From the NCBI RefSeq assembly GCF_000143415.4, contig NW_003314360.1, forward strand, positions 1 to 64,000: a DNA stretch of 64,000 bases. The letters are read 5' to 3'. A program made the position numbers and the translations under genes. Shown here piece after piece: positions 1 to 19,313 of this stretch (position 1 is the stretch's first letter; every line of letters starts with the position of its first letter). The notes beneath the pieces are model-generated. The model did no database searches and had not been told where the DNA came from. It saw only the letters and a list, made by a program, of their open reading frames with translations. Source of the stretch: Selaginella moellendorffii. Lineage: Eukaryota > Plantae > Lycopodiophyta.

Positions 1-3000
1 GTAGGTGATTCGCGGCTGCAGATTGATAGATGTACAGGTCAAGAGATTTTAGTTACAGGATCTCCGAAGCGAGGAGAGGAGAGCGCATCAGTTTCACAGC
101 CAACTGTGCAAAGAGTGAAGGATGAAGTTATTATTCTCTCCAGTGACGAAAATGAAGAAGATGAGCTTCCTGACATAGCTTCCCAGACAAGTAGGTGTGT
201 TCCTTCTGGACCAGTTTTTGAAGTGGTGGATAAGGCATTTCGGCAATCTCGATCATTACGGTTGGAATTGAAGGAGTTCCAGTACATGAGAGGTGAGGAG
301 CTTCCTTCTTCCTATAATGGGAATATATTCTTCGAGTTTCCACCAGCAAGTTCGTCAAGCAGGAAAAGGGGTATGGAAACACGTCTTGATCCACATAATT
401 GGTGCAGAGTAAAGACGACCCACTTCTCTCATTTCGATGGATCTGTGTCCATAGTCCATTGTGGTGGACAGCTTCAGTGTGTCGCTGAGAAATGCATTTC
501 TGATCATGGCAAGAATATGTGTTTCTTTGAAGGCTCAGCAATCAATCCCCCTAGGCGTGATGAAGTTGCTACAGGATTTAGATGTCGCAAATGCGGGGCA
601 ACACCTGTGTGTCAAGCATGTTGCGATGCGAAAATGTATTATTTTCTTCCACGGGATGGATGTTTAGGCAGAGCAGCAGTGCATATTGGATACCACCAAC
701 ACGCAATTGAGGAAGGAATCCGCCGTGATTCTTTTCGCAATTTGAAGACTGCTGTTACTACAGAGGCTAGGAAGAAAAGTGCAGCAACTCCAAAGTGTGT
801 TCAACAGTCTATACTAAAGGACTATGTGGTGGACATGTTGTTACAATCTGATAGCCAAAAAGAGTTCACGGAGAATAGCTTGAAGGACCTACTTCGAAAT
901 ATAGAACCTATGACAAATTTAAATAGGTATAAAATTAACACTTAACTCTACTTTATCACTAATAACACTCTTTTTTGATTGGATGGGATTTTGGAGCTAA
1001 AGAGAAAATGTCCCTATGAGTTTATTCATGGGAGCTTATTCGTTGGCCAAGTGACTTCGAACAATCAACGCCCTTTCATCTTTAAGATGTCTACCCTTGG
1101 TCCTGCTTCTGGTGTGGACCTTGTACAACGAATGGATATGGATGGAGATGGGGATTTAGCTAATTCCTAAATCCATTTTGACCATATGGAACGAGTTTTA
1201 GGCTGGTCAACAATGGGAGCTCATGTTTATGATCACAAGTAAGTGGCTTTTCATTTTTTAAGGATCTATACCAATTTACATTATAACCATTCCTTTTATA
1301 GGTTGCAGTGCAATTTGACTATAGCTATAGCCGAATTCAAAGTTCAAGATTTTCAAGCACAAACCATCTTTTGGACATGTATGTCCGAGGTTGTTGAACA
1401 GCGAACCGGGAAGAAACCCAACTTCCGTGGTTTCATGGCAGATGCAGCTGGTGCTAACTGGTTGGCTGTACGACAAGTATTCGGAGGTGATAAAAGTCAG
1501 CCATTACAAGGTAGAGAGAAGAGTTGTGAGTTTCATTGGGCAAAGAGCGTCAATGAACATTGCCGATGCATCAAGTCTACCTTCCATCACGAGTTCAAGC
1601 AGCTTTGTCGGAAATGGATGGATGCACCAACTAAAGAGGAGCACGAGGCAAAGGCAAATGAAATGCGCATATGGTGGCGTGAAGGAGACAAAGTGCCAAT
1701 TGAAAACCTTCCACAAATGGAATGCTGGCTTGCATGGTGGGAAGTTCGAATGTTTCAGTGGGGTCATTATACTCTCCATGTAAGATTTCTCTCATTTTCT
1801 TTCTTGTCACATTCAAATGTTGCATTTTTTGTAGGATCAACCACTTGATGATATTGCACTTACACCAACAATTAATCTCTCTGAGAGCAAACATTGGAGT
1901 TGGAGAGCTTCCGAAGCAGGGAAGGGAAAAGTGTCCCTCTATGAAGCTACACTCTCCGACCTCACTAGATCTCTTGAGCAATCATCAAAAGCTTTGGCTG
2001 CACAGGAAGCAAGGTTTGCTGGTACAGGTCCGAACTTAGACAGGCTTCAAGAGCGGGTTGGTAGAAGGACAACACCAGCAGCAGGGTCAATGTCCAAGAT
2101 GGTGGAGGAAGTTGTTGCTGGAACTCCTATGAAATCAAGTTATGAGCCACTTGGGGACATGAGAACAGCCCGTATGAAGCGTCGACAGACATTTGATGGG
2201 TCAAACATCACTCCTTCTAGCTCTCACCGTCCAGAGTTTGACTACCATTCTGTTCCACGACACCGGAAAAGAACTAAGGAACATGGAGTGGAGGAGGTGC
2301 CAGTTGTTACACAAGTAAGTCCAGTGCCAGAGGTTGAAAAGGTTATTTCTCGCGAGCCAGTTTCTCGTATCAACTGGGCAATTCGAAGAGTCAGTGCCAA
2401 GAGCAATGCACGTTGCTCTGGAATGATTGGGAGTCGAGGTCAGTGTCTCGCTTTTGTGCGCTCAGGTTCAAGTTCTTCAGCAGTGCCATGTTTCTGGGGC
2501 TGTCGAGATCTAGGAGTGAAGGGCCGCCAGTCAAGCTGGATCTACTGTTGTGGGACTGATGTTACTCATACAAGCAGGATCCACAGCTCAATTATTTTGA
2601 AGCCAAATTCTGTGCCAGAGGAGTGGCCAGTTGAGCGAAGCTGCAATCTTTTGAAAGAAGAGATTGAAAGTCTGGAGAGAGCAGGTTTCAAGCTAAAGAC
2701 TTCCTCAAATGTTGCTATTAGTACTGCTATGCCACCAATATCAACACTAGACCGGCATACACGACCAGCTAGGAATGGGAAGGCTATACAATACAGGTCT
2801 TCCATTTCGAAAGGTGCACAAGAGAAGATCAAGTTGGCAAAAGAGCTAAAGTGCACAATCACAAAGACAAACTACATCAGTGCTATGGCTAAGGAGTTTA
2901 TTATTGTGACTGAGTCATCAAAGGGTACGAGCTACACTGTTAAAATCTGCGAAAATCCATCCTGTACCTGTCCAGATTTTACACAGCGGGAGAACAGGGG

Positions 3001-3127
3001 AAAGGTATATTTAGCCTGCAAGCACATCTATTACATTTTTATGCAGGAACTAAACCAAGATCCTAAGATCGACCATCACATCCACCAGGCAAGCCTTACA
3101 GTTGCGGAGCTTGAGAAGTGTTTTTAG
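1..3127 (+). mobile_element. Mutator-like (MULE) DDE transposase gene with N-terminal GCM-like Cys/His domain and C-terminal SWIM zinc finger; disrupted, 5' end probably upstream of the window
   Basis: ORFs 106-945, 979-1170, 1243-1848 and 1931-3127 join via short GT-AG introns (1239-1301, 1780-1834). Catalytic-type motifs FDH, FMADAA, CEFH (CxxH) and NLSESKH; SWIM motif CTCPDF...CKH. In-frame TAA at 1168-1170. Confidence 0.75.
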
Positions 3128-3269
3128 ATTGCTTTTAGTGTTCGGATCTATATTTATATTTGTATTTTATTAGTCGAATTTACTTGGAAATATAGATTAA
3201 ATCAAAATTTGAAGAATGGAAAGATGTTGGTTCGGGACGAACCAATGTTTTTCTTGTGTTTGAGAAGCC

Positions 3270-3311
3270 GTGAGCTCAGCTCATGAGCTCAGCTCGTGAG
3301 CTCATGAGCTC
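3270..3311. repeat. Cluster of palindromic GAGCTC/TGAGCTCA motifs, possible subterminal/TIR region of the MULE
   Basis: gtgagctcagctcatgagctcagctcgtgagctcatgagctca about 140 bp after the transposase stop. Confidence 0.45.
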
Positions 3312-4348: not shown

Positions 4349-4944
4349 TATGTGAGAACAATCTTTAATTTATAGTAATAAGGTTACATAAGCAATGAGG
4401 TGGCATGTAAATCCAAATAAGCAAATGGGGCCAAAGGGGGGTGTTGTATTGGGCATTCTACCTGTGGTTGAAAAGTGCAGGACCTTAGTCTGGGAGGCCT
4501 TTGGGCAGATTAGGTAGGAGATGTGGAGAGCATTTGGTGTGCAAGTAAGCTCAAAACTACAAGCACTTTGAGGGGGAGAACACTAGGATCTCAATGATTA
4601 TAGCAAATTAGTGGAGGCTCACGTTGGCAGCAGTTTGACTCAAAGAGACAATGTTGCAAGAACATGGTAAGAGAGACACACTCGAGGTGCGGTGAAGGTA
4701 ATTGATCCCATGAGTATGAAGGAGGAATCAAATGGAAGTGAAAACATCCAGATATGGGAAGGAGGCGAGGTGAGGAGACATCGACTTGGACATTCTGAGG
4801 AGGAGACAACCGTAACAATCCCTCTTGGAGGGTAGAGAACACCACAAGACATGTTTTTAGTGAGAGGCAAGATATGAGGGAATAACACCTTGAGGGTGTT
4901 CTTTTTTTTGTAATAGTCCCTAAAAGACCTTGAGAAATGTATGC

Positions 4945-5302
4945 ACTTGCATCCAACCAGAGAACAGTCCCACTTTTTTCAGCGTAACAATCCATGCCTT
5001 TGTCAGGAACAAAGCTCCAATTGAAAGCATGAATCAAGTTAAACAATAGCAATTGAGCAGTCTTCAATCCCAGTGACATCCCTAGACACATTCTTTGGCC
5101 CAGCCCAAAGTCCTGGCCTTTTATGTCAATCAAGTTTTCCCAAGGAACCTTTCCATCCTGAATCACAGTGCATCCTCCCTTACTGCTGGATCTCTTCCAA
5201 TTGTATAACAATTGACAAATGTGGAAGTTCCCTTGGGAATGTCATAGCCAGCAACCTTGCACGCTTCAGTTGACATGTGAATCAGCAGTGGAGCTGGACC
5301 TT
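4945..5302 (-). pseudogene. Cytochrome P450 pseudogene fragment (C-terminal exon), paralog of the P450 at 7716-9259
   Basis: PLLIHMSTEACKVAGYDIPKGTSTFVNCYTIGRD and DIKGQDFGLGQRMCLGMSLGLKTAQLLLFNLIHAFNWSFVP align to exon 2 of the intact P450; stop, frameshift and deletion of ELLPF. Confidence 0.85.
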
Positions 5303-6267
5303 GACGATTGCCCAAGGTACTCCAGTTTGTCAAAGCCTCTCTCTGCAACAAGGCATTCCTTTCCGACGATGGTGTCAATCTAAATTTATATTATAATTTA
5401 TAAACTTTCTTAAGTGTATTTTAAGTAATATGATTAATCTTGTGTTTATAAATTATGTATAAATAGCACACACCATTTCCAATGAAAGAGAAGTATCTAA
5501 GAGGTATATAAGATGTTGAGGTAAAGAGGTGGAAAGATGTAAAGAACAGAAGGAATTTACAAGAAAGAAAAAATATAAGTAATCAATATTCTTTGTCACA
5601 GTTACTCTTTCCAATAGGAAGGATGAATTGATGATCTATTGATATAAAAATTGGTTGCATTTAACAGTCCATGTGAGTGTCTTTGACTTGATATGTTCTT
5701 ATTTTCTTGCTAAACTATTCTGCTGGTCTGCTTAAAACTTAGTGGTCCAACTTTGATGATTTTATGCAATTATTGATCAAGATATTTTATGGAGCCGACA
5801 ATGTAAAAAAGCAACTTATATTGGTCTCATCCTTCTACCTGTTGCAATTTGATTGACATACCACCGAGCTAAAAATATTAAATATCCTGACTAGACTAAG
5901 AAGTTTTCTTGTCTTCCAGGACAGGACACCTGTTTATGGCATTATCTCCCAGGAAACAGCAAGCTTTGAAGGTTTCTTGGACGACCTAGGATTCTAAGCT
6001 TCTAGTCTTCTAAGCTCTGGATGAAATAAGACTGAGCATAGAATACTGCTGACTTCCATATGTGCACCGCGTGAGGAATGGCTTGGCTGGGCGAACAATG
6101 TATATGACAAAGTGCTAGGTGATCATCCGAATTGCGTAAAAAAATCATGGCTGCAGTAAGTTGCAAGGTTGCCATGCATTTTTCATTGATTTTCACTTCG
6201 TATGTAGCTAGTTTACAAAGTAAAGGCCACGCTACTAAGAGAAAAATAGCTGGAAGTACATCGATTT

Positions 6268-7362
6268 TCATATCAAGTTTGATAAATTTTGGATCTGGTT
6301 GAGTTTGTTTGAACTTGCCACCACGTTGCACCTTTTCGGGTCCGACACGATGATGGTGCGCTTTGGATCCAGAATCCAAGTCCCACGAAACGTGCCTCCA
6401 CCCAGTAGGGGGTTATCCATGCCATGGTAGCAGCTGCTCGCATAATGGAACACCAGATTCGCTGGGATTGTGCAGGAGAGAACATCCAGGAACTTCAGGA
6501 AATCTTTCTTCCCATTCCGGGACGCATTCGTGGCAAGGATATCACGGTAATAGATGAATTCGTCTTCCTTGTCCTGGATCATCCTGCACGTAGTGTTCAC
6601 GGCGTCCTGAAACGTCTGCACGCTCGGATCGGTGAGCAGCAGCACCGCCGGAAGATTGTTAAACTTCTTCTTGTAAAACTCCTTGGGAAACGAGAAGACG
6701 TCGTTCACCATCCACATATGATCGAGCATAGCGTTCTGAGCCCTGATGTAATCCAGGGACTCAACATCCTCATCGTCAAACGAAGCACCCATTGCGTAGA
6801 TGAGTGGCAGAATGAAGACGTTCTTCCTCCGGTAGAGCTCGTAGTCCTGCGTTAAGTCGTCACTCGAGATGCTTCTCGCCCAGCCCTCAACAGTGGAAAC
6901 CGTGCGCTTGAACAGCTCCGGCTTCAACAGAGACCTCAAATCCTCCATCAGATCGTGGCACGCTCGATAGGCAAGAATGTCCGGAACTTCCGCGAGCGAT
7001 GCGGTTCCATAGCAGAGGCTAAGAACAGTGTCGAGATACGATGTCGCGAGAGCTCCCGCAGCAACCTCGTTGTCATCAAACGGATCGTTCAGGAAGGCAG
7101 TGAGCCAGGCAAACTTGGCCGACGCCACCATGTTGGCTTTTGGAGCGTGAGGCGTGGAGAGGCACGTAAACATTGGAACTTTCCACTGGACCAGGCATTT
7201 CTTCTCCTCCGGACTGAAATCCCTCCTCATGCATTTGAATGCCCACTCGTTTGCTTCCTTGGTGATTGACATATACTCGGGATGCCTTTGGAAAGGTATC
7301 TCCGGCGTGAGAGCAAAGAGATGTTCTACCGCTGGTAGCTTCTGTAAACACGGACTTGCCAT
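6268..7362 (-). CDS. MTPSL: Microbial terpene synthase-like protein (class I, alpha-domain only), intronless, 364 aa
   Basis: Size and motif layout of bacterial/fungal-type terpene cyclases: Asp-rich motif LNDPFDD, pyrophosphate-sensor region YELYRR, NSE/DTE motif NDVFSFPKE and C-terminal HYASSCY at the RY position; no introns. Confidence 0.92.
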   Translation of the reverse strand: MASPCLQKLPAVEHLFALTPEIPFQRHPEYMSITKEANEWAFKCMRRDFSPEEKKCLVQWKVPMFTCLSTPHAPKANMVASAKFAWLTAFLNDPFDDNEVAAGALATSYLDTVLSLCYGTASLAEVPDILAYRACHDLMEDLRSLLKPELFKRTVSTVEGWARSISSDDLTQDYELYRRKNVFILPLIYAMGASFDDEDVESLDYIRAQNAMLDHMWMVNDVFSFPKEFYKKKFNNLPAVLLLTDPSVQTFQDAVNTTCRMIQDKEDEFIYYRDILATNASRNGKKDFLKFLDVLSCTIPANLVFHYASSCYHGMDNPLLGGGTFRGTWILDPKRTIIVSDPKRCNVVASSNKLNQIQNLSNLI

Positions 7363-7715
7363 TTCTTTAGAGATGGTTTCGAGATATTTTCTTCAATTTA
7401 TGCTGCTAGGTTTCACGTGATCATGCCCAAGAAGTTTCCTGCTTGGACTGACTTTGATTGTGTACAGAAAATAGAACCGGTAGTTGTCAAAGAAAAGGCG
7501 GTCAGTTATTCTCATCTAAACTGCAACGCTTTTTCTTTGGGAGTCTAATGAGTCCATTTATAATGACTTGAAAGATTGTTGTGTAGTCAATTCAAGTGTG
7601 GCACTCGTCAAAGTTGTGGCTGACTAGAATTCTCAACAACCAATCTCAACCAAGTTTGAAGAAGCAAGCATATAATTGCCAAGGGCTATTTGCTTCTCAA
7701 ATCTCAAATCTTCAT
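7363..7715. promoter_or_regulatory. Putative bidirectional promoter between MTPSL and P450
   Basis: 353 bp between divergent ATGs; TATAAT at 7671-7676 (+), TATAAA at 7557-7562 (-), G-box CACGTG 7414-7419, W-box AGTCAA 7585-7590 plus several TGAC cores. Confidence 0.55.
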
Positions 7716-9259
7716 ATGGGGACTCTCCTCTATGTCATAATCTTGCTTGCTTTTGTCTATGTCTTAAGGAAATATTTGCTGCGCCTTAAGCTGCCTCCAT
7801 CTCCATGGGGATTGCCCCTCCTTGGACACCTCCATCATCTCGCAGGAATTCCCTTCCTTTCATTGCATGCCCTGTCCAAGCAGTATGGACCAATTCTCTT
7901 CATGAAGCTGGGAACCGTGCCAGCGGTTGTCATCTCAAGCTCGGTTCTCGCCAAAGAGGTGTTGAGGTCGCAAGATCAGATGTTTGCTTCCAGGCCTTAC
8001 ATCCTCGTTGGAGACTATGGCTTGTACCACTTCCAGGGGATCGGACCTGTCCCTTACAATGATCACTGGAAGATGATGCGAAAGCTCTGCGCCACGGAGC
8101 TTTTCACTCCCAAGAGGATCGACTCGTTTCTCCCAATCAGGCTAGAGGAGATCACCGGCATGTTTTCGGCGCTTCGAGGTGCTGGAGCGCACAAAGCTGT
8201 GGACATGAGGAACATGTTGTCGATCTTCACCTTCAATGTCATGACCCGGATTCTCATGAACAAGAGATTCTTCGAGTACGGGGAGGATGAGGAACACATC
8301 GATGGCGAGGCCAAGCAGTTCAAAGACATTGTGTTCGAGACAGCAGACCAGGGACTCCAGTTTCATATCAGCGAGTTCATCCCGCACTGGCTCCGGTGGA
8401 TTGATTGGAAAGTCCCGGAACTGAAGAGGCTCCATGCGAAGAAGGATAAGTTTCTCCAGAACATCCTTGACCAGCACAAGGACATGGCATCGACAAAGGG
8501 ACACAAGGACTTCATGGACATCATGCTGCAAAATCTAGAGCACAGAGGAGCAGCCAGGGAGGATTTCATCAAGGCAGTAGTCCTTGTAAGTTTCCCCACA
8601 CAACTTGTTTTGGTCACCAATCTCAAAACCATTTTGATCTGCAGGAACTCACCATTGCGGGGACCGATACAAGCGCTTGCATTGTCGAATGGACCCTCCT
8701 GGAGCTCCTTCACAACCCCCGAGTCCTGAGTAAGCTCAAGGAAGAGCTCGATGCAGTGGTGGGATCAAGTAGTCACATGGTCGAGGAGCCCGATTTCCAG
8801 AACCTGGACTACCTCAACGCGGTGATCAAGGAAGCTTTTCGTCTCCATCCACCTCTGCCGCTCCTCATTCCTCACATGTCGACTCAGACTTGCACCATAG
8901 CCGGCTTTCACGTCCCAAAGAATGCCTTCACGTTTGTCAACGTATACTCAATCGGAAGAGAGCGAGGGGTATGGGAAAGGGCGGATGAGTTTTGGCCGGA
9001 GAGGTTTCTTGGTAAGTCCGTGGATGTTAGAGGCCAGGACTTTGAGTTGCTTCCATTCGGATCCGGGCGACGGGCTTGTGCGGGAATGCAGCTGGGCTTG
9101 AAGACTGTCCAGCTTTTGGTGTCCAATTTGGTCCATGCTTTTGACTGGAGCTTTGTTCCAGGCAAACCGAGTGAAGATTACCTCCTTCAAGAACGTCATG
9201 GCACTGTTAACTGGATCAAGACCCCATTACAAGTTTGTGTCGTTCCTAGGACCAGATAG
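7716..9259 (+). CDS. Cytochrome P450, CYP71 clan (A-type), 2 exons (7716-8585, 8645-9259), ~494 aa, intact
   Basis: N-terminal membrane anchor, PPSPWGLP hinge, phase-0 GT-AG intron 8586-8644 just before I-helix AGTDTS, KEAFR (ExxR), FWPERF and heme motif FGSGRRACAG. Confidence 0.95.
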
Positions 9260-9963
9260 CTCTCTTCTGTTTAACTGAAAATAAACCAATCTTTTGGTAC
9301 AATGGATTGAACTATCTCAGGGATGGAGATCTCGGGCTCAACTCGGGCAACAGGATCATCATGTCTGTTGGTACAGAGTGATGTTAATTGGGTGCTGGTA
9401 GTTCCCAATATTTTGCAGTGCTACTTCAAAACCCCTAAGTGATCCTCATTGCTTCTCTATGAAGCATGTAAACATGCTTCACAGACTAGGTATACCAGGC
9501 TCTCTTGAGCTGATCAAAGGGATGTTTCAAGAAGATTGTTATCACAGGCTAGAAACTTGGCTAGTAATCATTCTTCCCCATCTCAGGTATGGCATCAAGC
9601 TTACCATTAGAGCAAACATAAATTGCACTCATTACAGAATTTTTGATATACATTTTCTAGGTCAGTCAACATTGTTGGAAAATCCTTCTTGACTTTTTAC
9701 TACACATCCACCAAGTTCAAACCTTTGATGAAATATTACACCTTTAGCAACTCATTATAAGTGCTTATGAAACTAAGGTAAATATCACGAAATTTGCAAG
9801 TATATGCATTTAAAAACAAAGTCCTCTACCTAATCCTTCTCACTGTTCTGTAGGAGTCAAAGTAAAGCATTGTTTACTTGACCAGAAAAAAGAATGCAAA
9901 TCTCATTCACAGCCTACAACCATTGCAAGAAATTGAGAAATTGGGCTTTGATCCAGCACAGCC

Positions 9964-10308
9964 ATGGGTGTTTTCATCTACTTCAAAGGATGCTGAGGAG
10001 CTACAGGCTTTGGTTTAGGAAGCACTGCCAAAAAGGTTGCACAGAATTGACTAAATTATGTGAATTCATTATCCAACTCTTTGCAATTTCGCATGCAGGG
10101 GCTAGGTCGGGAACTGGGTTTGCGACTGCCAGAGTCTTGGCTAAGTATGGCACCCATGTTGTATTCCAGCCAGAAAATGCAAAGGCAGCAAAGTCTAAGA
10201 TTCAACAAGAAGGAAGCAATATGAAAGTAATACTCTTGGGGTTGGATCTGAGCTCTCTCATGTTGGTAAGGAAGTTTGTCAAAGAATTCAAGGCTTTAAA
10301 CCTTATCC
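9964..10308 (+). pseudogene. 5' fragment of a TIC32-like SDR, paralog of the SDR at 19499-20894
   Basis: MGVFIYFKGC*GATGFGLGSTAKKVA then GARSGTGFATARVLAKYGTHVV...LDLSSLMLVRKFVKEFKALNL, colinear with exons 1-2 of the intact SDR; premature stop, truncated at a Copia remnant. Confidence 0.85.
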
Positions 10309-10600
10309 TAAAGAAGAAAAAAGAAAGAATAGAGCTGGATCTCAAGGTAAATGTATCTAACATGATTAGAGCAACAGATCTATTATACTAGAGCTACTAG
10401 AGGTATTGCATGAGCTAATAAGGAGTGAGCACTGAAGCTAACTAGAGTTAATTGGAGATGGTGGATTCCATTATGTTCCAACACTCCCTTTTCTTGGTGT
10501 GCCACTGACAAGAATGACTCCTAAATTGTGGCAATGATTAGTGAATGTGGACTCTTGGTAAAGGCTTGGTGAGGATATCTGTCATCTATTCATGACTTGA
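10309..10600 (-). mobile_element. Ty1/copia 3' end remnant (RNase H C-terminus, PPT, start of 3' LTR)
   Basis: Minus-strand DILTKPLPR; purine tract AAGGGAG followed by TGTTGG at ~10483. Confidence 0.55.
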
Positions 10601-10735: not shown

Positions 10736-11089
10736 TTCTCACCAAGTTTGTCTAAAATATCATCCACACACAATATTAGCATATTATCCTTCACTATTTC
10801 TTGTTCAAGGCACAGTAGTTAATACATATCCGCATTGAAACATCCTTCTTCACAAGCAAAACTAAAGCACCAAATGAAGACTTACTTAGCTGAATAAATT
10901 TAAACTCAAGTAACTTTTTGACTTGTCGTTGAACTTCTTGCTCTTCTACATAACTCAACCGAAATGGATGCCAGTAAATTGGCTACATCCTTAACTCCCT
11001 CTTGGATATGGTGTGTTGCCTTCTTCTGCATTTCAGACTGCCACACAGCTTCTGGGGAGAAGCAGTGAACACGACAGTTTACTTGCGTA

Positions 11090-12720
11090 ACCGTTTGCCC
11101 ACCCGAAGCACAAGCTTGATCCCGCATCACGTTTGGACTGGGAAACGTCCACATTGAGGGCACATCCGGATCCTTGGGTGCAGTGCGTATGCCCGCATCC
11201 CTGATCCGAACAGGCGCAAGCTCGATCCACGCAGCACAAAGACCATCTTCATGGGCTAAGGCCTACCAGCTCTACAAAAGAAGCTTGTAGTGAGCCGCGA
11301 CGTGATTTTCAACGAGCAAGAGCTGTATCGAGACCTCAAAGGTACTTCAAGCATTCAACTGATCTTGTGGATCTTTCTTTGGTTCTGGATAAGGTGCTTC
11401 CTCTTTCGCTCCCAGCTCCAGAGAATTTTCCTCCAGGAGGAGCTAACAACCAAGGCCCACAAGATCCTGGCCGAGCAGTGCCCTTGGTGGCTGGAGGTGA
11501 TGGATCTCCTCCTCACACGCCACTTCTTGCACCTCCAGGAGCCTCTACTGCTTCCACCAGCAGTCCCACTTCTTCAGCTGAGCCCTCGCTTGTTGCCATC
11601 GTCGACGACATTTTTGAAGGCGATGAAATATTTCATCAAGCATCCACCCAGGCCGTTGACCCCGTGATGACTCCTCCACCTCCACAGGTCTTTGGTCCAT
11701 GACATAACCAAGCCTTCAGTCAAAGTGCTTGAGGCCATTGCCCAGGAACCACGATGGAAAGGACAATGCAAGGCCTTCCTGAGCCTCAAGGATATATGGC
11801 CGCTCTTGCCAGTCCTGATGGTCAAAGCAAGAGGTGATGCAAGATGAGTATTCTTCTTTGCTGACACTTGACTCTCATGCCATTGCCATCAAAAGAAGGA
11901 AAGTCGTGAGCTCCAAGTGGCTCTTTAAAGAAGAGCAAGGAAGTACAAGGTGGATGGGAGTGTGGAGCGATTCAAAGTCAGATTTGTCACTCCTGGCTTC
12001 TCGCAAATTCAGGGAGTTGACTATTCTGAGACTTGCGGTCGGGTAGTTAACCTAACCACCATCCGCTTGCTTTTGGTTTTAGCAGCCGAGCTTGATCTTG
12101 AGCTCTATCAACTCAATGTGCGCACATCATTCCTCAATTGTGATCTTGAGGAGGAGGTGTATGTGGCACAGCCTTAAGGTTTTGTCCTTCCAGGCCAAGA
12201 ACACCTCATGTGCCAGCTGCATAAAGCTCTCTATGGGCTGAAACAAAGCCCCAGGTCTTGGTATAACAAGATTAATGGTTTTCTAATTACTCTTGGCTTC
12301 ATATGCAGCTCAGCCGATGGTAATCTCTACATCTACTTTGAAGGTGAAGGATTTCTCTTCCTAGTGCTTTATGTGGATGATATCGCTTCTAACCAAGTCC
12401 AGCTTATTCACAAGATTAAGACATATCTCTCTGCAAAATTCGAGATGGTGGACCTTGGTGAGCTGCATTACTGCCTTGGAATCCAAGTACGACACAACAA
12501 GAGACATGAGATTCTAGAGCTCTCTCAAGAAAAATACATCCTGGATGTACTTCAGAGGTACTCTATGCTCGATGCTAATCTTGTGGCCACTCCTATGCCC
12601 GCAGGCCTTAAGCTTTCTAAAGCTTCTACATCCGAGACATATCGCACTGCCGGAAAAGCGCCAGAACTCTCTACCGTTCGATGGTCGGCAGCTTGATATA
12701 TCTCGTGATTTGAACAAGGC
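11090..12720 (+). mobile_element. Degenerate Ty1/copia pol fragment (post-integrase and reverse transcriptase)
   Basis: SRDVIFNE, ERFKVRFV..GFSQIQGVDY, LHKALYGLKQSPRSW and LYVDD motifs; stops and frameshifts. Confidence 0.9.
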
Positions 12721-14149
12721 CGGATTTGGGGGTGAATTATCAACTAGATTCATCTCAACTGGGCAAGCAAAGACTGGCAAATGCTACAACCTATTCTTCA
12801 CTGGATTGTGATAGGAGAAGAGTATGGCACACTAACACTAGGCACATTAATAGTTTTAATCATTCATGCCCAAGCAAAAAAAGAGGTAAAGGACTCATCC
12901 CAAGATCAACTTAAGTCCTGGAGCATGGCCATTGCAATGCTCTGTGATCAGATCATGGTGTGCATCCTCCACCATCATTACTGTCACTGCCAGCATCAAA
13001 TCCTTGAAGTTGGGCAATTCAGTGTTCAAAATAGTGAACTTGGGTTGCAAACTTTTATGACAATATGGTGGACAAATGCTTCCAAAAAATTGTTATATAG
13101 ACAAGGGAAAAAACAATTCACCAAATTTTTAAAGGGCTTAAATGGCTAAGCCCAGATGGAAAATCTTCTTTTACCATTTACAATAGACAAACCTTATGTG
13201 CACAGCATCCAACTTGAATATATACAACCTATCCAAATAAAATAGTCTTGCAATGAATATTGGTATGTTTTTTACAAGCCATGAATAATAGAGATCATGA
13301 AAAGTTAGGATCCTATTTGGAGAAAAAAGTCCCTTTAATTCAATAACATGGTTATCAACCATCATAAGATTTAGTAGCTTATAGGGACAATATTTCAAAT
13401 TATTAATGATAATCATTAATATAGAGCTTGGATAAAGTGTATTAACATTTATTTTTGTGATGAACCTATCTACCATATTAACATTCCAATTAGCCATGTC
13501 TATATAAGGGTACCAATGTCAACAAATTTATCTTGGCTTACCAAAAGATTAATGCATAATTTTACTAAAATTTCACCTCTACCTCTACTTTAACTTGCTT
13601 TGTTATGGTTGAATGCAGACTTGAGTAATTTTTTGTCCAAAAGCAAAACTTTATTTATGACATTAAGCAATTTTGTTTTTGGGAGACTTGAGTAAGGATG
13701 ACATTTGACAATATTATGGTGATGATCTCACAACACTTATTTAGTACTCATGCACTCGGAATGACAGTATGATATAATTTAACAATTTAATCAATTTTAT
13801 GTGTGCAATGTGGTGCAAAGTATGTCTTTCCTTCACTTTATAAGGGCTTATTTTTATTGGTTTAGTTTATAGCCTTTAGTGAAGGTAAAGCAAAATGTAT
13901 ATAAACTTGTGCATCCGGAAAGAGTCAGAAAGATGTTTTAGCTAAGCTTTTATAAATTGAGCATAATGTAAAGTCTTCAAAGTTGAAAAAAATATATATA
14001 TTATAAATAATTGCAGACCAAAAGAGTGACTAGAGACTATAGCCGAAATTTTTACTCACGAATGTAAGTTTCTTATCATAGGCTTCATTTTTCTCAATTA
14101 TACATATATTACTTTTGTAGTGAATAAAACTTAAAATGATGTAGATTCA

Positions 14150-15001: not shown

Positions 15002-17115
15002 TATTAGGCTTCAGCTTTGACCATGTGGTCAATGTTGGTCAAAGGAGGCTCAAGGGTATATTAAGGCATGTTAGGGTAAGGAACTAACAATGGAACTTTT
15101 GAGGTAGCTCAGGGGTGGTTGGGTGGTGAGGAACCTCAAAAGGAGGTGTAGTGTAGTCTATGAAGACTAGATTTTTGTCTTTTCGTGCCAGATCATAACA
15201 TTGGTATCAGAGGGAAGTTGGTTACGATGGCCAACCAAGCTGAACGCTGGAATCCTATTGTTAATGGTGGTGACGGAGCTATAAAGGTTTGGACCATTCA
15301 AGATGTTGTTCATGAGCTGTAAGCCCTTAACTGAAATCAACAAGAGATGCAAGATGAGATGCATGGCATGATGGATACCATGTGTGAGTGTGTTGAATCA
15401 CTCGAGGCTGAACGTGGTAGCGTTCCAAGTAAGCCTTCTTTGGTAGATCAACTCAAGATTCCAACTTTTTCCAGTGATGGTGGTGTGAACGAGTGTCTCG
15501 CTTGGCTAGCCAATGTGAAAAAGTTCTTGGCTGCTAGAGGAACTCTAGATGCAAAGGTTTTAGTGGCTATTCCAATGGTTTTGTGTGATGCAGGTATTTG
15601 GTGGTGGAATTGGCTTAAAAATCCTATGTTGCGGATAAAAAACCACCAAATGAGTTTGAGGTTGCTTTTCATCTATGTTTTGCCCCTTATTATGACATGA
15701 AGAATGCTCATATAGAACTTCAACATTTTCAGCAAGGAAAAATGACGCCCGAGAACTATATTAAGAAGTTTATTCACTTGATTAGTCATGTTTCCACAAA
15801 GGATCTAGATCAAAGCAAGTCCTACTTCATTAATGGCCTTCATAGTGAGAGTATGTGGCAACACTTATATCATTCTTAGTCTACAAAGAATTTGGAGGAG
15901 CTCTTTGATACAGCTCATCAACTTTACAATGACAAGCACAAATCTTGCAAGCATTCGAGGAGTTCTTCTGTCAAGAATCGTCATGATGATTATCATGGAC
16001 ACAAGGATGGAAACAAGCATCACAAGCTAAAGTTTTTGGTGGTTACTTTGGATGCAAAGGGGTCAAAGAAGCAGAAGTTCTTTGTGAAGAATTATAAACA
16101 GGGTTGTCATTATTGTGGTGAGCTCAGACATTACAAGGCTGATTATCCACAGTTGAAAAACAAGCAACAGAGCAAGAAGAATGGTCAATCTTCTACTGAC
16201 GGTAAGTTAGATATTAAAAAGTTGCAAACTTTGCAATATAAAGATAATGGGGATGATCATTTTAGTCGAAGGAAGAGGCTTTCGATCATTGCTCATCAAC
16301 TCAATTGTGTTTGGAACAGGATGGAGCCCGAGGACACTCGTGAATCAATTTTAATGCTGAGTGGCTGTCAAGTGTGGATTTTACTAGATAGCAGGAGCGA
16401 TGACAACTTTGTTTCGACAAAGTTTGTTGCAGAGCATGGCTTGGTGACACAAAGAGTTCTTCCATATACAGTGGAAGGTGTAGCTACCTTTGCTCAGCAT
16501 TTCAATGCTTGTGTAGTGGGGCTGGAAATGTTGGTTGGCAAAACCACACTTCTGGAGACTTTTTATCTTGCGGATATTATTATCAATAAAAATATATTAA
16601 GTTTAATAAAAGTTTGTATATGTTTTTATCAATTTTTACCACTTTCAAAATATTTCTACCACTATTTATAACATTCTTGATATTTGTTGTAAAAGTTAGA
16701 ACAATTGACATATTGGAAAGCTCTTTATAAAGACAACCACTAATTAAGATAGAAATTTTATAGAGTCAAATATCCAAAGCTTTTTTTGGGGATTTTTGGG
16801 ATGCCATGGTTGGTGAAGGTGGATCTGGAGGTAAAGTGGAGTATTAAACGTGTCTTGCTGGAGTACAGTGGTGTTAAAGATGTGTGGTTTGGAGAGGGAA
16901 TTTAACCTCCAGTTATTATGCTCTCTACTACATCTTTAGAGTGGGTTTGTCATAATGGAAAACCACTTTCGAATTACTTATTATTTGTTCGTGACTTGGG
17001 GGACCAAGGCACGTGTGGGTGAGAAGCAACAATATGGAATATACTTGACGAGTTTATTGATGTTTTTCCATCCTCATGGGTTGCCTCCATTATGAGGTGT
17101 GGAACATGGGATTAC
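15002..17115 (+). mobile_element. Degenerate Ty3/gypsy element: 5' LTR (15002-15200), tRNA-iMet PBS, gag and protease; truncated at a Copia element
   Basis: LTR ends ...ATAACA followed by TTGGTATCAGAG (15201-15212); gag PTFSS..WL, zinc knuckle CHYCGELRH, protease LLDSRSDDNFV resuming as IFGMPWL after a ~210 bp AT-rich insert (~16580-16790). Confidence 0.85.
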
Positions 17116-18922
17116 ATTCGTTTGGTTAAACCTCTCAACCACACCATTCTGCTGTGGTGTATAAACAACTATGTACTGATGAGAAATTCCTGCCTCAGCT
17201 AGGAATTGGAGAAATCCTTGTGCAATGTATTCTCCTCCTCCATCTGTGCGTAGCACATGGATTTTTCTTCCTGTAAAATTTTCTGCCCAGCTTTTGAAAA
17301 TTTTAAAGTTTTCAAAAACTTCGGATTTGTTTCCTACCAAACACACCACTGTGTATCGTGAGTGATCATCTATGAATGAAACAAAATACCTCTTTCCACT
17401 TAGGAAATTTACAGGAAGATAGCAAACATCTCTGTGAATAAAATCAAGCACTACTGTGGCCTGGTTTTCCAAGGGTCGGGGAGGAAAAGGATGGCGTGCA
17501 TGTTTGCCAAATTGGCAAGTATTGCAAAGTCCCAGATGTCCAGATGGAAATGCGATGCCATCAGCTAGCTTGCTGTGAGCAAGGTTCTGGAGATCCTTCT
17601 CATTTACATGCCCGAGACGAGCATGCCAAAGATGAATTGTCTCTTGGCCTTGAAGTGCTAGCATGTATGTCCCTGGATAAACAAGCTCTGCGTTGAGGCG
17701 ATAGAGTGTATCGTACCTCACTCCAGTTGCCACAGTGGTGCCATCTGCTCCAAAAACAGTACATCCTTCTGCAAAGAATGTGATTGAGAACCCTTGATCG
17801 GAGGCGACGCCAACCGAAAGGACAGTCTGGCCTGCACCGGGCACATAGTGCATGTTATGGATTTCCTTGAGAGATCCATTGGGCAACTTCACTTGCACCA
17901 TGCCACGGCCTTCAACGTCGAGAAGCCGCTTGTCTCCAACAAAGACTTGGTTTGGGGAAAGCAATTCGTGGAAAGTGTGGAATGCTGTACGAAGAGGAGT
18001 CATGTGGTAAGAAGCACCACTGTCCAACCAGAGGACGTCTAAACCAGACACCGGTGACGAGGCCACGGCCATCATCAGCAACGAGTCTGTTTGAGTTAGC
18101 ATCCGTTGGGTGTTTGCTTTCTTAGCTCGACATTCTTGCTCTATGTGCCCCATCTTCCCGCAGTAGGTACACGGCCCCTTCTTTTTCTTGTTTCCATTTG
18201 TGGTGGAGCCAGGTGTTGGTGTCGCAGGAGCACTGGCAAATCCGCGAGAATTCCCACGCTTCTTGGCATTTCCATTTCCTGACTTCTTGCTGATGAACAA
18301 AGCCTGATCACGAGCAGAATCTGAGGAGGTCGTGCCTGCTTTTCGCTCCAGAAGCTTGCGCTCTTCTTCCAAGAGATTGGAATAGATCGTCTAGGGTCTT
18401 TCCTGGAACGAAGGAGAACATGGAGGAAGACGGTTGGAGTTCAGAAGAAACCGAATAGAGAAGGAAAGCTTTGGCATAATCGTCCGAGACAGGCGCGCCA
18501 GCCTCCTTAAGCTCTTGCATCATCCCCTTAAGCTTGCCAATGTACGATGCCATCGTGTCTGTTGGCTGCATCCGGAGAGAAAGGAACTTCTGGGTTAAGG
18601 ACGATCATGGCATTTGCTGCTTTCGCAGCAAACACCTGCACCAAGGACTACCAATTCTCGTGAGCGGTCTTCGAGAGATCCAGCAGATGGATGAACTCGT
18701 CGCCGAGTCCTAAGCCAAGCGGGCTCTTCTATTCTTGGCTTTCCACACTGGCTGGAGAGCGGGCTCAGCTGGTTCAGCTTCGGTGCCGTCCACGATTGTC
18801 CAGCAATCGTTTGCCATCAAGATGAGCTGGACCTTTGTTCTCCAGGTTGCGAAGTTTTCTCCTGTGAATTTGTGTAGTAGTTTCTCCCAGCTTGGGGTTA
18901 CAGCAGCGGAAGAAGATGCCAT
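17116..18922 (-). mobile_element. Ty1/copia gag-protease-integrase, frameshifted and 3'-truncated
   Basis: KFTGENFATW gag start, CTYCGKMGHIEQEC knuckle, WLDSGASYH protease, LWHARLGH..CNTC, integrase core FIDDHSR / RTDGGGEY / PQQNGVVER. Confidence 0.92.
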
Positions 18923-19213: not shown

Positions 19214-19313
19214 NNNNNNNNNNNNNNNNNNNNNNNNNNNNNNNNNNNNNNNNNNNNNNNNNNNNNNNNNNNNNNNNNNNNNNNNNNNNNNNNNNNNNNN
19301 NNNNNNNNNNNNN
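19214..19313. other. Assembly gap (100 N, true size unknown)
   Basis: Run of exactly 100 N. Confidence 1.

Follow-up and report, generated by a model that had tools for sequence, protein, structure and literature searches.

Two abutting promoter pieces between a divergent MTPSL gene and a CYP797H gene of Selaginella moellendorffii

Transcribed away from each other in the spikemoss Selaginella moellendorffii are an MTPSL gene, for a microbial-type terpene synthase, and a P450 gene, which we analysed within a window of 64,000 nucleotides that forms the first 64 kb of scaffold GL377664.1 (GCA_000143415.2). Seven related loci of the same assembly (L002-L008) were compared with it by blastn, tblastn and alignment. 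The MTPSL start codon is the complement of 7360-7362 and that of the P450 lies at 7716-7718, leaving a spacer of 353 bp (7363-7715) with 38% GC. Measured between ATGs, this is well inside the 1 kb between divergent starts that defines a candidate bidirectional promoter. The descriptive part of an earlier note on this DNA agrees with what we find: divergent start codons 353 bp apart (7362/7716), an MTPSL (PF19086) beside a P450 (of the CYP71-clan subfamily CYP797H), a G-box, a W-box, TGAC cores and a TATA-like box facing each gene, all at the places it gave, and a pair that lies on one contig and does not depend on the gap, the sole N run of the window being at 19214-19313 (100 N). The features are collected in Table 1.

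Table 1. Features of the divergent MTPSL/P450 locus, in window coordinates
Feature	Position	Strand	Description	Method
CYP797H remnant	4954..5381	minus	SELMODRAFT_115634 type; frameshifted C-terminal part, ~aa 360-481; 3' of MTPSL, same strand	tblastn, Pfam, blastx
MTPSL ORF	6268-7362	minus	single exon, 364 aa + stop, intact; JGI model SELMODRAFT_428151	
MTPSL RY-pair site	6430-6432 (Cys codon)	minus	CY at aa 311-312	
MTPSL NSE/DTE motif		minus	NDVFSFPKE at aa 220	
MTPSL Asp-rich site	7087-7089 (codon)	minus	NDPFDD at aa 92	
MTPSL-side proximal block	7363..7526	minus	~164 bp; G-box and TATA-like box	blastn, alignment
TATA-like CATAAAT	7396-7402	minus	faces MTPSL, 34-40 bp before MTPSL ATG; TATAAAT in paralogs	
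G-box CACGTG	7414-7419			
Block junction	7520..7527		few bases overlap, no filler	alignments
CYP-side proximal block	7520..7715	plus	~195 bp; W-box, several TGAC cores, TATAAT 7559-7564, ATATAAT 7670-7676	
Further TATAAT	7559-7564			
W-box TTGACT	7585-7590	minus	single copy	
TATA-like ATATAAT	7670-7676		faces CYP, 40-46 bp before CYP ATG	
CYP exon 1	7716..8585	plus	aa 1-290; membrane anchor and PPSP hinge	
CYP intron	8586..8644	plus	59 bp, GT-AG; identical at CYP797H4 locus	
CYP exon 2	8645..9259	plus	aa 291-494 + stop (9257-9259); AGTDT, ExxR, PERF, haem loop FGSGRRACAG	

The P450 gene has two exons and encodes an intact protein of 494 residues, whose joined sequence is identical to SELMODRAFT_130230 / XP_002989591.1 (P0128). 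Both exons match PF00067 in Pfam, and the motifs of the P450 fold are in place, with FGSGRRACAG at residue 428, PERF at 408, EAFR at 353 and AGTDT at 295. With names taken from UniProt, the protein is 97.6% identical to CYP797H4 (P0007), 55.7% to CYP797H2 and 54.9% to CYP797H6, the range being about 55-59% once SELMODRAFT_115634 is included. P450 nomenclature assigns a protein to a subfamily at an identity of at least 55% to named members, and the 97.6% to CYP797H4 places this one in CYP797H. In a database search run exon by exon, its closest relatives outside Selaginella were CYP81, CYP736, CYP71 and CYP75, at ~35% identity, and it therefore belongs to the CYP71 clan. Relative to CYP797H4, dS is ~0.05, and omega rises from 0.06 for exon 1 to 0.44 for exon 2; the higher value is due to a patch at residues 386-402 that is canonical in the window P450 and altered in the CYP797H4 of L005. 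Within this patch of CYP797H4 exon 2 (L005:10930-11541), nine densely packed amino acids differ from the window P450, and the usual IGR(D/E) before PERF, which the window P450 retains, has been lost. A compensated frameshift or a conversion tract may account for the patch. The window P450 is itself under purifying selection, with nothing broken in it. In the papers that could be searched, there was no mention of CYP797 in the P450 sense, nor of the accession numbers of either gene.

The MTPSL protein matches PF19086 (Terpene_syn_C_2), the metal-binding domain of microbial-type terpene synthases, in Pfam over residues 84-267 (E 4e-12). Its profile also finds 9lpb (E 9e-16) and VenA 7y9g, two synthases of bacterial type with solved structures. 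By Pfam and profile, it has what is expected of an MTPSL, namely an alpha domain of microbial type in a protein of ~350-400 residues without beta or gamma domains. Public gene models differ at the 3' end (4954-5381 minus and 6002-6379 minus): RefSeq XP_024519167.1 (P0001) splices the MTPSL onto a CYP pseudogene fragment, giving a chimera of 407 residues, and JGI SELMODRAFT_428151 (P0137) adds another small 3' exon to reach 371 residues. The paralogs favour the unspliced single-exon ORF of 364 residues. In the supplement of PMC7826640 we found none of five SELMODRAFT numbers belonging to the window MTPSL and its closest paralogs, and no EFJ09305.

Selection on the MTPSL can be judged against its paralogs, where omega is 0.27-0.30. 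In class I synthases, the DDxxD and RY residues bind Mg2+ and diphosphate. The role of DDxxD in metal binding is also stated in PMC7826640. The NSE/DTE motif of the window MTPSL is in order, its NDVFSFPKE aligning with NDLFSFRAE of 9lpb. The DDxxD motif reads NDPFDD; in every paralog it is DDP(F/I)D, and 9lpb and 7y9g retain the first Asp. The RY pair reads CY where all paralogs, 9lpb and 7y9g have RY. Eight N-terminal residues of the paralogs are absent as well. Relative to the two sisters nearest to it, the window branch has five synonymous and four non-synonymous changes of its own (D92N, K140E, A298T and R311C), and two of these four lie in catalytic motifs: D92N replaces the first Asp of DDPFD, and R311C the Arg of RY. 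By a rough estimate, if four random substitutions fell on 364 residues, two would hit ~10 key residues in roughly 0.5% of cases. Prosser and colleagues are said to have described in 2004 a natural NDxxD variant of a plant germacrene D synthase that is active, so D92N alone is no proof of inactivity. Since N92 and C311 are both confined to the window MTPSL among its paralogs, the enzyme may yield little or no product, and its activity is probably reduced or altered. Apart from these two residues, it is well conserved.

Beyond the pair, the window is rich in fragments. On the 3' side of the P450, an ORF at 9894-10391 on the plus strand has a weak N-terminal SDR match (E 2e-5, below the Pfam cut-off) and is probably an SDR fragment of a repeated unit. 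The P450 and the SDR/FAD-oxidase genes are separated by Copia-type retrotransposon pieces at 10800-13150 and 17074-18372, which contain RVT_2 as well as Pol beta-barrel, GAG-pre-integrase and integrase domains. The MTPSL, the P450, the SDR fragment and a BBE-type FAD oxidase fall within 17 kb, with retroelement pieces and the assembly gap in between. In a plant biosynthetic gene cluster, neighbouring non-homologous genes of this kind would also serve one pathway and be co-regulated. On the other side of the pair, an ORF of 398 residues at 1931-3127 on the plus strand has no Pfam match and a Cys/His-rich stretch at its C-terminus. The DNA over most of this ORF is 85-93% identical at L004 (window ~65-3291) and, over shorter lengths, at L002 and L008, and because it recurs there we regard the ORF as part of a repeated block.

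Motif content gives the spacer little distinction. It holds seven TGAC cores in addition to the elements of Table 1. Against a null of 5000 first-order Markov simulations, and with about eight motifs tried, P was ~0.03 for the G-box, ~0.04 for TGAC (7 observed vs 3.3 expected), ~0.06 for TATA-like hexamers and ~0.47 for the W-box. The G-box and TGAC values are nominal, and no spacer motif is significant after correction for roughly eight motifs; the counts are near chance. A search of 5000-10000 against Rfam gave no match. At the fetched loci, divergent pairs of called genes lie 240-560 bp apart, so a divergent gap of 353 bp is ordinary in the compact S. moellendorffii genome.

These results bear on the reading that the spacer works as a bidirectional promoter and keeps both genes co-regulated for a pathway of two steps, the CYP797H enzyme oxidising a terpene supplied by the MTPSL next to it. 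In favour of this, neither ORF is broken, purifying selection on the P450 is strong, and some SmMTPSLs are elicitor-inducible, as the earlier note had stated: a response to alamethicin and MeJA is documented for SmMTPSL23, -33 and -37 (PMC7826640). Set against these points are the near-chance motif counts, a spacing typical of the genome, and the D92N and R311C changes in the catalytic motifs of the MTPSL.

The origin of the spacer weighs further against that reading. The alignments show that the 353 bp consist of two adjoining proximal promoter pieces, and that each piece has been inherited along with the gene it precedes. The MTPSL-side block has 90-94% identity with the DNA that precedes MTPSL paralogs at L002, L003, L004 and L007; homology with these four loci runs upstream through the MTPSL gene and stops at window positions 7491-7526. 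The CYP-side block recurs in conserved form ahead of CYP797H4 (L005) and ahead of H4-type 5' fragments at L004 and L008, and here homology with H4-type CYPs starts at 7520-7549 and continues into the P450. Because the homologies end at the junction, the G-box and its TATA box can be assigned to the MTPSL block; the CYP block contains the W-box, the remaining TATA boxes and most of the TGAC cores. At L005 and L008 the H4 block is preceded by the 3' end of a further P450 with the same orientation, and at L002, L004 and L007 the MTPSL block adjoins the 5' end of an H2-like P450. Among the sampled loci, the MTPSL block and the H4 block touch only in the window. The earlier note had taken the spacer for one shared promoter, a view that is weakened by two independently duplicated blocks meeting at ~7520-7527 and by a typical spacing. 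Its further claim, that the pair is tightly co-regulated, is unsupported by the sequence evidence and weakened by the mosaic spacer; real co-regulation may still exist.

A junction of this kind could in principle be a chimeric join at 7520-7527, introduced when the Sanger assembly confused repeat copies that are nearly identical. The region does belong to a family of copies that are 93-96% identical, and its left and right halves resemble different loci. We nevertheless consider such an artefact extremely unlikely, as there is no gap near the junction (the one N run is some way off, beyond the P450), no repeat common to both blocks at the junction that might have misled the assembler, and a difference of ~5% between both halves and every other copy, so that neither half is a misplaced copy.

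Two other accounts of the junction were tried and rejected. A stretch of ~10 bp at 7529-7538 might have been filler templated by an inverted repeat, but it aligns with the CYP block of L008. A single inversion relative to the CYP797H4 locus is at odds with the DNA at 4567-4952, beyond the CYP remnant, which follows L007 and not L005. The inverted repeat itself has arms of 13 nt at 7488-7500 and 7527-7539, 12/13 complementary, and spans the junction; it is probably due to chance, since its right arm is part of the CYP block.

Within the MTPSL block, the ACGT/G-box and the TATA box lie within 60 bp of the MTPSL ATG. A 29-nt ACGTG...TATAAAT module that covers them is also present upstream of the MTPSL paralog of 81% identity at L006, with a local score of 28, where 300 shuffles averaged 18 and reached 30 at most. 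This lends modest support to the module as a putative core promoter of the MTPSL clade. Upstream of the same paralog (L006:9815-9965), there are two copies of a ~19-nt repeat, GGGCAGC(A/T)TGACGTGAAA, one of which adjoins TATAAAT. These repeats suggest an ACGT-core element as a typical part of promoters in this MTPSL clade.

The arrangement of the window is not a solitary one. Across the seven sampled loci we found five further copies of the same layout, in which an MTPSL, with a P450 remnant behind it on the same strand, stands head-to-head with a CYP797H gene. At L002, L004 and L007, the MTPSL faces an H2-like P450 bearing stops and frameshifts, across a gap of ~150 bp as worked out at L002 and L007; the MTPSL is intact at L002 and L007 and frameshifted at L004. 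L003 holds a broken MTPSL and a vestige of a P450 start. At L008, an intact CYP797H2 adjoins an MTPSL that lacks residues 1-81. There (L008:9081-10001), the CYP797H2 ATG and the truncated MTPSL body, which begins at residue 82, are separated by ~105 bp only, so the CYP797H2 promoter would have to be very short or lie within the dead MTPSL. The remaining two loci are built otherwise: at L005, CYP797H4 is preceded on its own strand by a P450 pseudogene and by an MTPSL of which the last 99 codons are left, with no MTPSL 5' end beside CYP797H4, and at L006 the paralog of 81% identity has a PPR gene on one side and an IFT gene on the other, without a P450 nearby. Copies on GL377616.1 may be paralogs or diverged haplotypes.

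The link between this MTPSL clade and CYP797H is thus real and repeated, and the view of terpene synthase and P450 as a recurring unit, which the earlier note brought from other plants, holds for this clade at the sampled loci. As to its proposal that other MTPSL paralogs might also be head-to-head with this CYP family, five other copies are, but each has a broken partner, and L006 has no such pair. Among the sampled copies, both ORFs are intact only in the window, and the window pair could on this ground be maintained by selection. The recurrent head-to-head layout is a point in favour of a co-regulated pathway, as are the precedents of a bidirectional MTPSL promoter in Marchantia and a TPS-P450 pair in Dictyostelium (bioRxiv 10.64898/2026.07.16.738752). 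Since the spacer was joined recently from two blocks with separate histories, and since 5/5 of the other sampled units are without one working partner, we think it unlikely that a working bidirectional promoter drives a two-step pathway here. The proposal that this P450 is the best candidate oxidiser of the MTPSL product has likewise lost ground, in view of D92N and R311C and of the partners lost from the other units.

The same decay could mean that nothing functional connects the two genes: their adjacency would be a by-product of segmental duplication and rearrangement, the MTPSL an early pseudogene or silent, and the P450 a member of an unrelated pathway. Of the nine sampled MTPSL copies of the subfamily, five are broken; CYP remnants lie beside nearly every copy; retroelement fragments occur 1.5-9 kb downstream of the P450; and 2/4 private MTPSL substitutions affect catalytic residues. 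Yet the MTPSL ORF is complete, its five synonymous and four non-synonymous private changes indicate no general relaxation of constraint, and the presence of an MTPSL beside CYP797H at six loci is hard to ascribe to chance alone. On balance, such neutral wreckage seems quite improbable to us. At the other extreme, this could be a lycophyte-specific, independently evolved TPS-P450 module built on a horizontally acquired synthase, in which selection re-made a working pair by bringing a live H4-type P450 into the slot of a dead H2-type one; N92 and C311 would then mark an altered chemistry and not a dying enzyme. We regard this proposal as a long shot.

The explanation that we favour, and hold to be somewhat better than an even bet, is that of a real divergent pair in a young, decaying array of MTPSL/CYP797H units, with a mosaic spacer in which each gene has its own core promoter. 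An H4-type CYP stands in the slot held by H2-type CYPs in the sister units, so this pairing was made by a rearrangement, at ~5% nucleotide divergence or less, the order of events being reconstructed by parsimony from seven loci. Each gene would be driven mainly by its own core promoter, and any co-expression would presumably arise from proximity or a shared chromatin domain and not from a co-evolved bidirectional element. The in-vivo substrate of the P450, if it is a terpene, may equally come from the intact sister MTPSLs SELMODRAFT_421420 and SELMODRAFT_428159.

If the pair is functional, it would extend TPS-P450 pairing to microbial-type synthases in a lycophyte, and would provide a small two-gene module for Selaginella terpenoid oxidation as well as a first clue to what CYP797 enzymes do. 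In a compact and duplication-rich genome, adjacency is weak evidence for co-regulation, and the synthase nearest to a P450 may not be the active one. The recurring MTPSL/CYP797H unit, together with the repeated loss of one partner, is the more informative pattern.

Terpene synthases near P450s of the CYP71 clan, multiplied by duplication, are a feature that the window shares with angiosperm genomes. TPS-CYP gene pairs in angiosperm terpenoid clusters were reportedly described by Boutanaev and colleagues in 2015. Such pairs are also covered in a review (PMC6779861). The angiosperm pairs differ in that they join classical plant TPSs to CYP71, CYP76, CYP99 and CYP705, whereas the window joins a single-domain synthase of microbial type to CYP797H. 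The closest demonstrated parallels are the MpCPT5-MpMTPSL2 pair of Marchantia and the TPS-P450 pair of Dictyostelium discoideum (discoidol/discodiene). In Marchantia, as in the window, an MTPSL of a non-seed plant stands head-to-head with a candidate pathway partner across a short spacer; the partner there is a cis-prenyltransferase and the spacer measures 1,556 bp, in contrast to a P450 and a mosaic spacer of 353 bp here. Co-expression, two-way reporter activity and knock-out phenotypes have been demonstrated for MpCPT5-MpMTPSL2 (bioRxiv 10.64898/2026.07.16.738752). The Dictyostelium pair, which that source cites, likewise consists of a microbial-type TPS and a P450 that diverge from a short spacer. 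It differs in belonging to an amoeba, and in that its P450 was shown to convert the TPS product (bioRxiv 10.64898/2026.07.16.738752).
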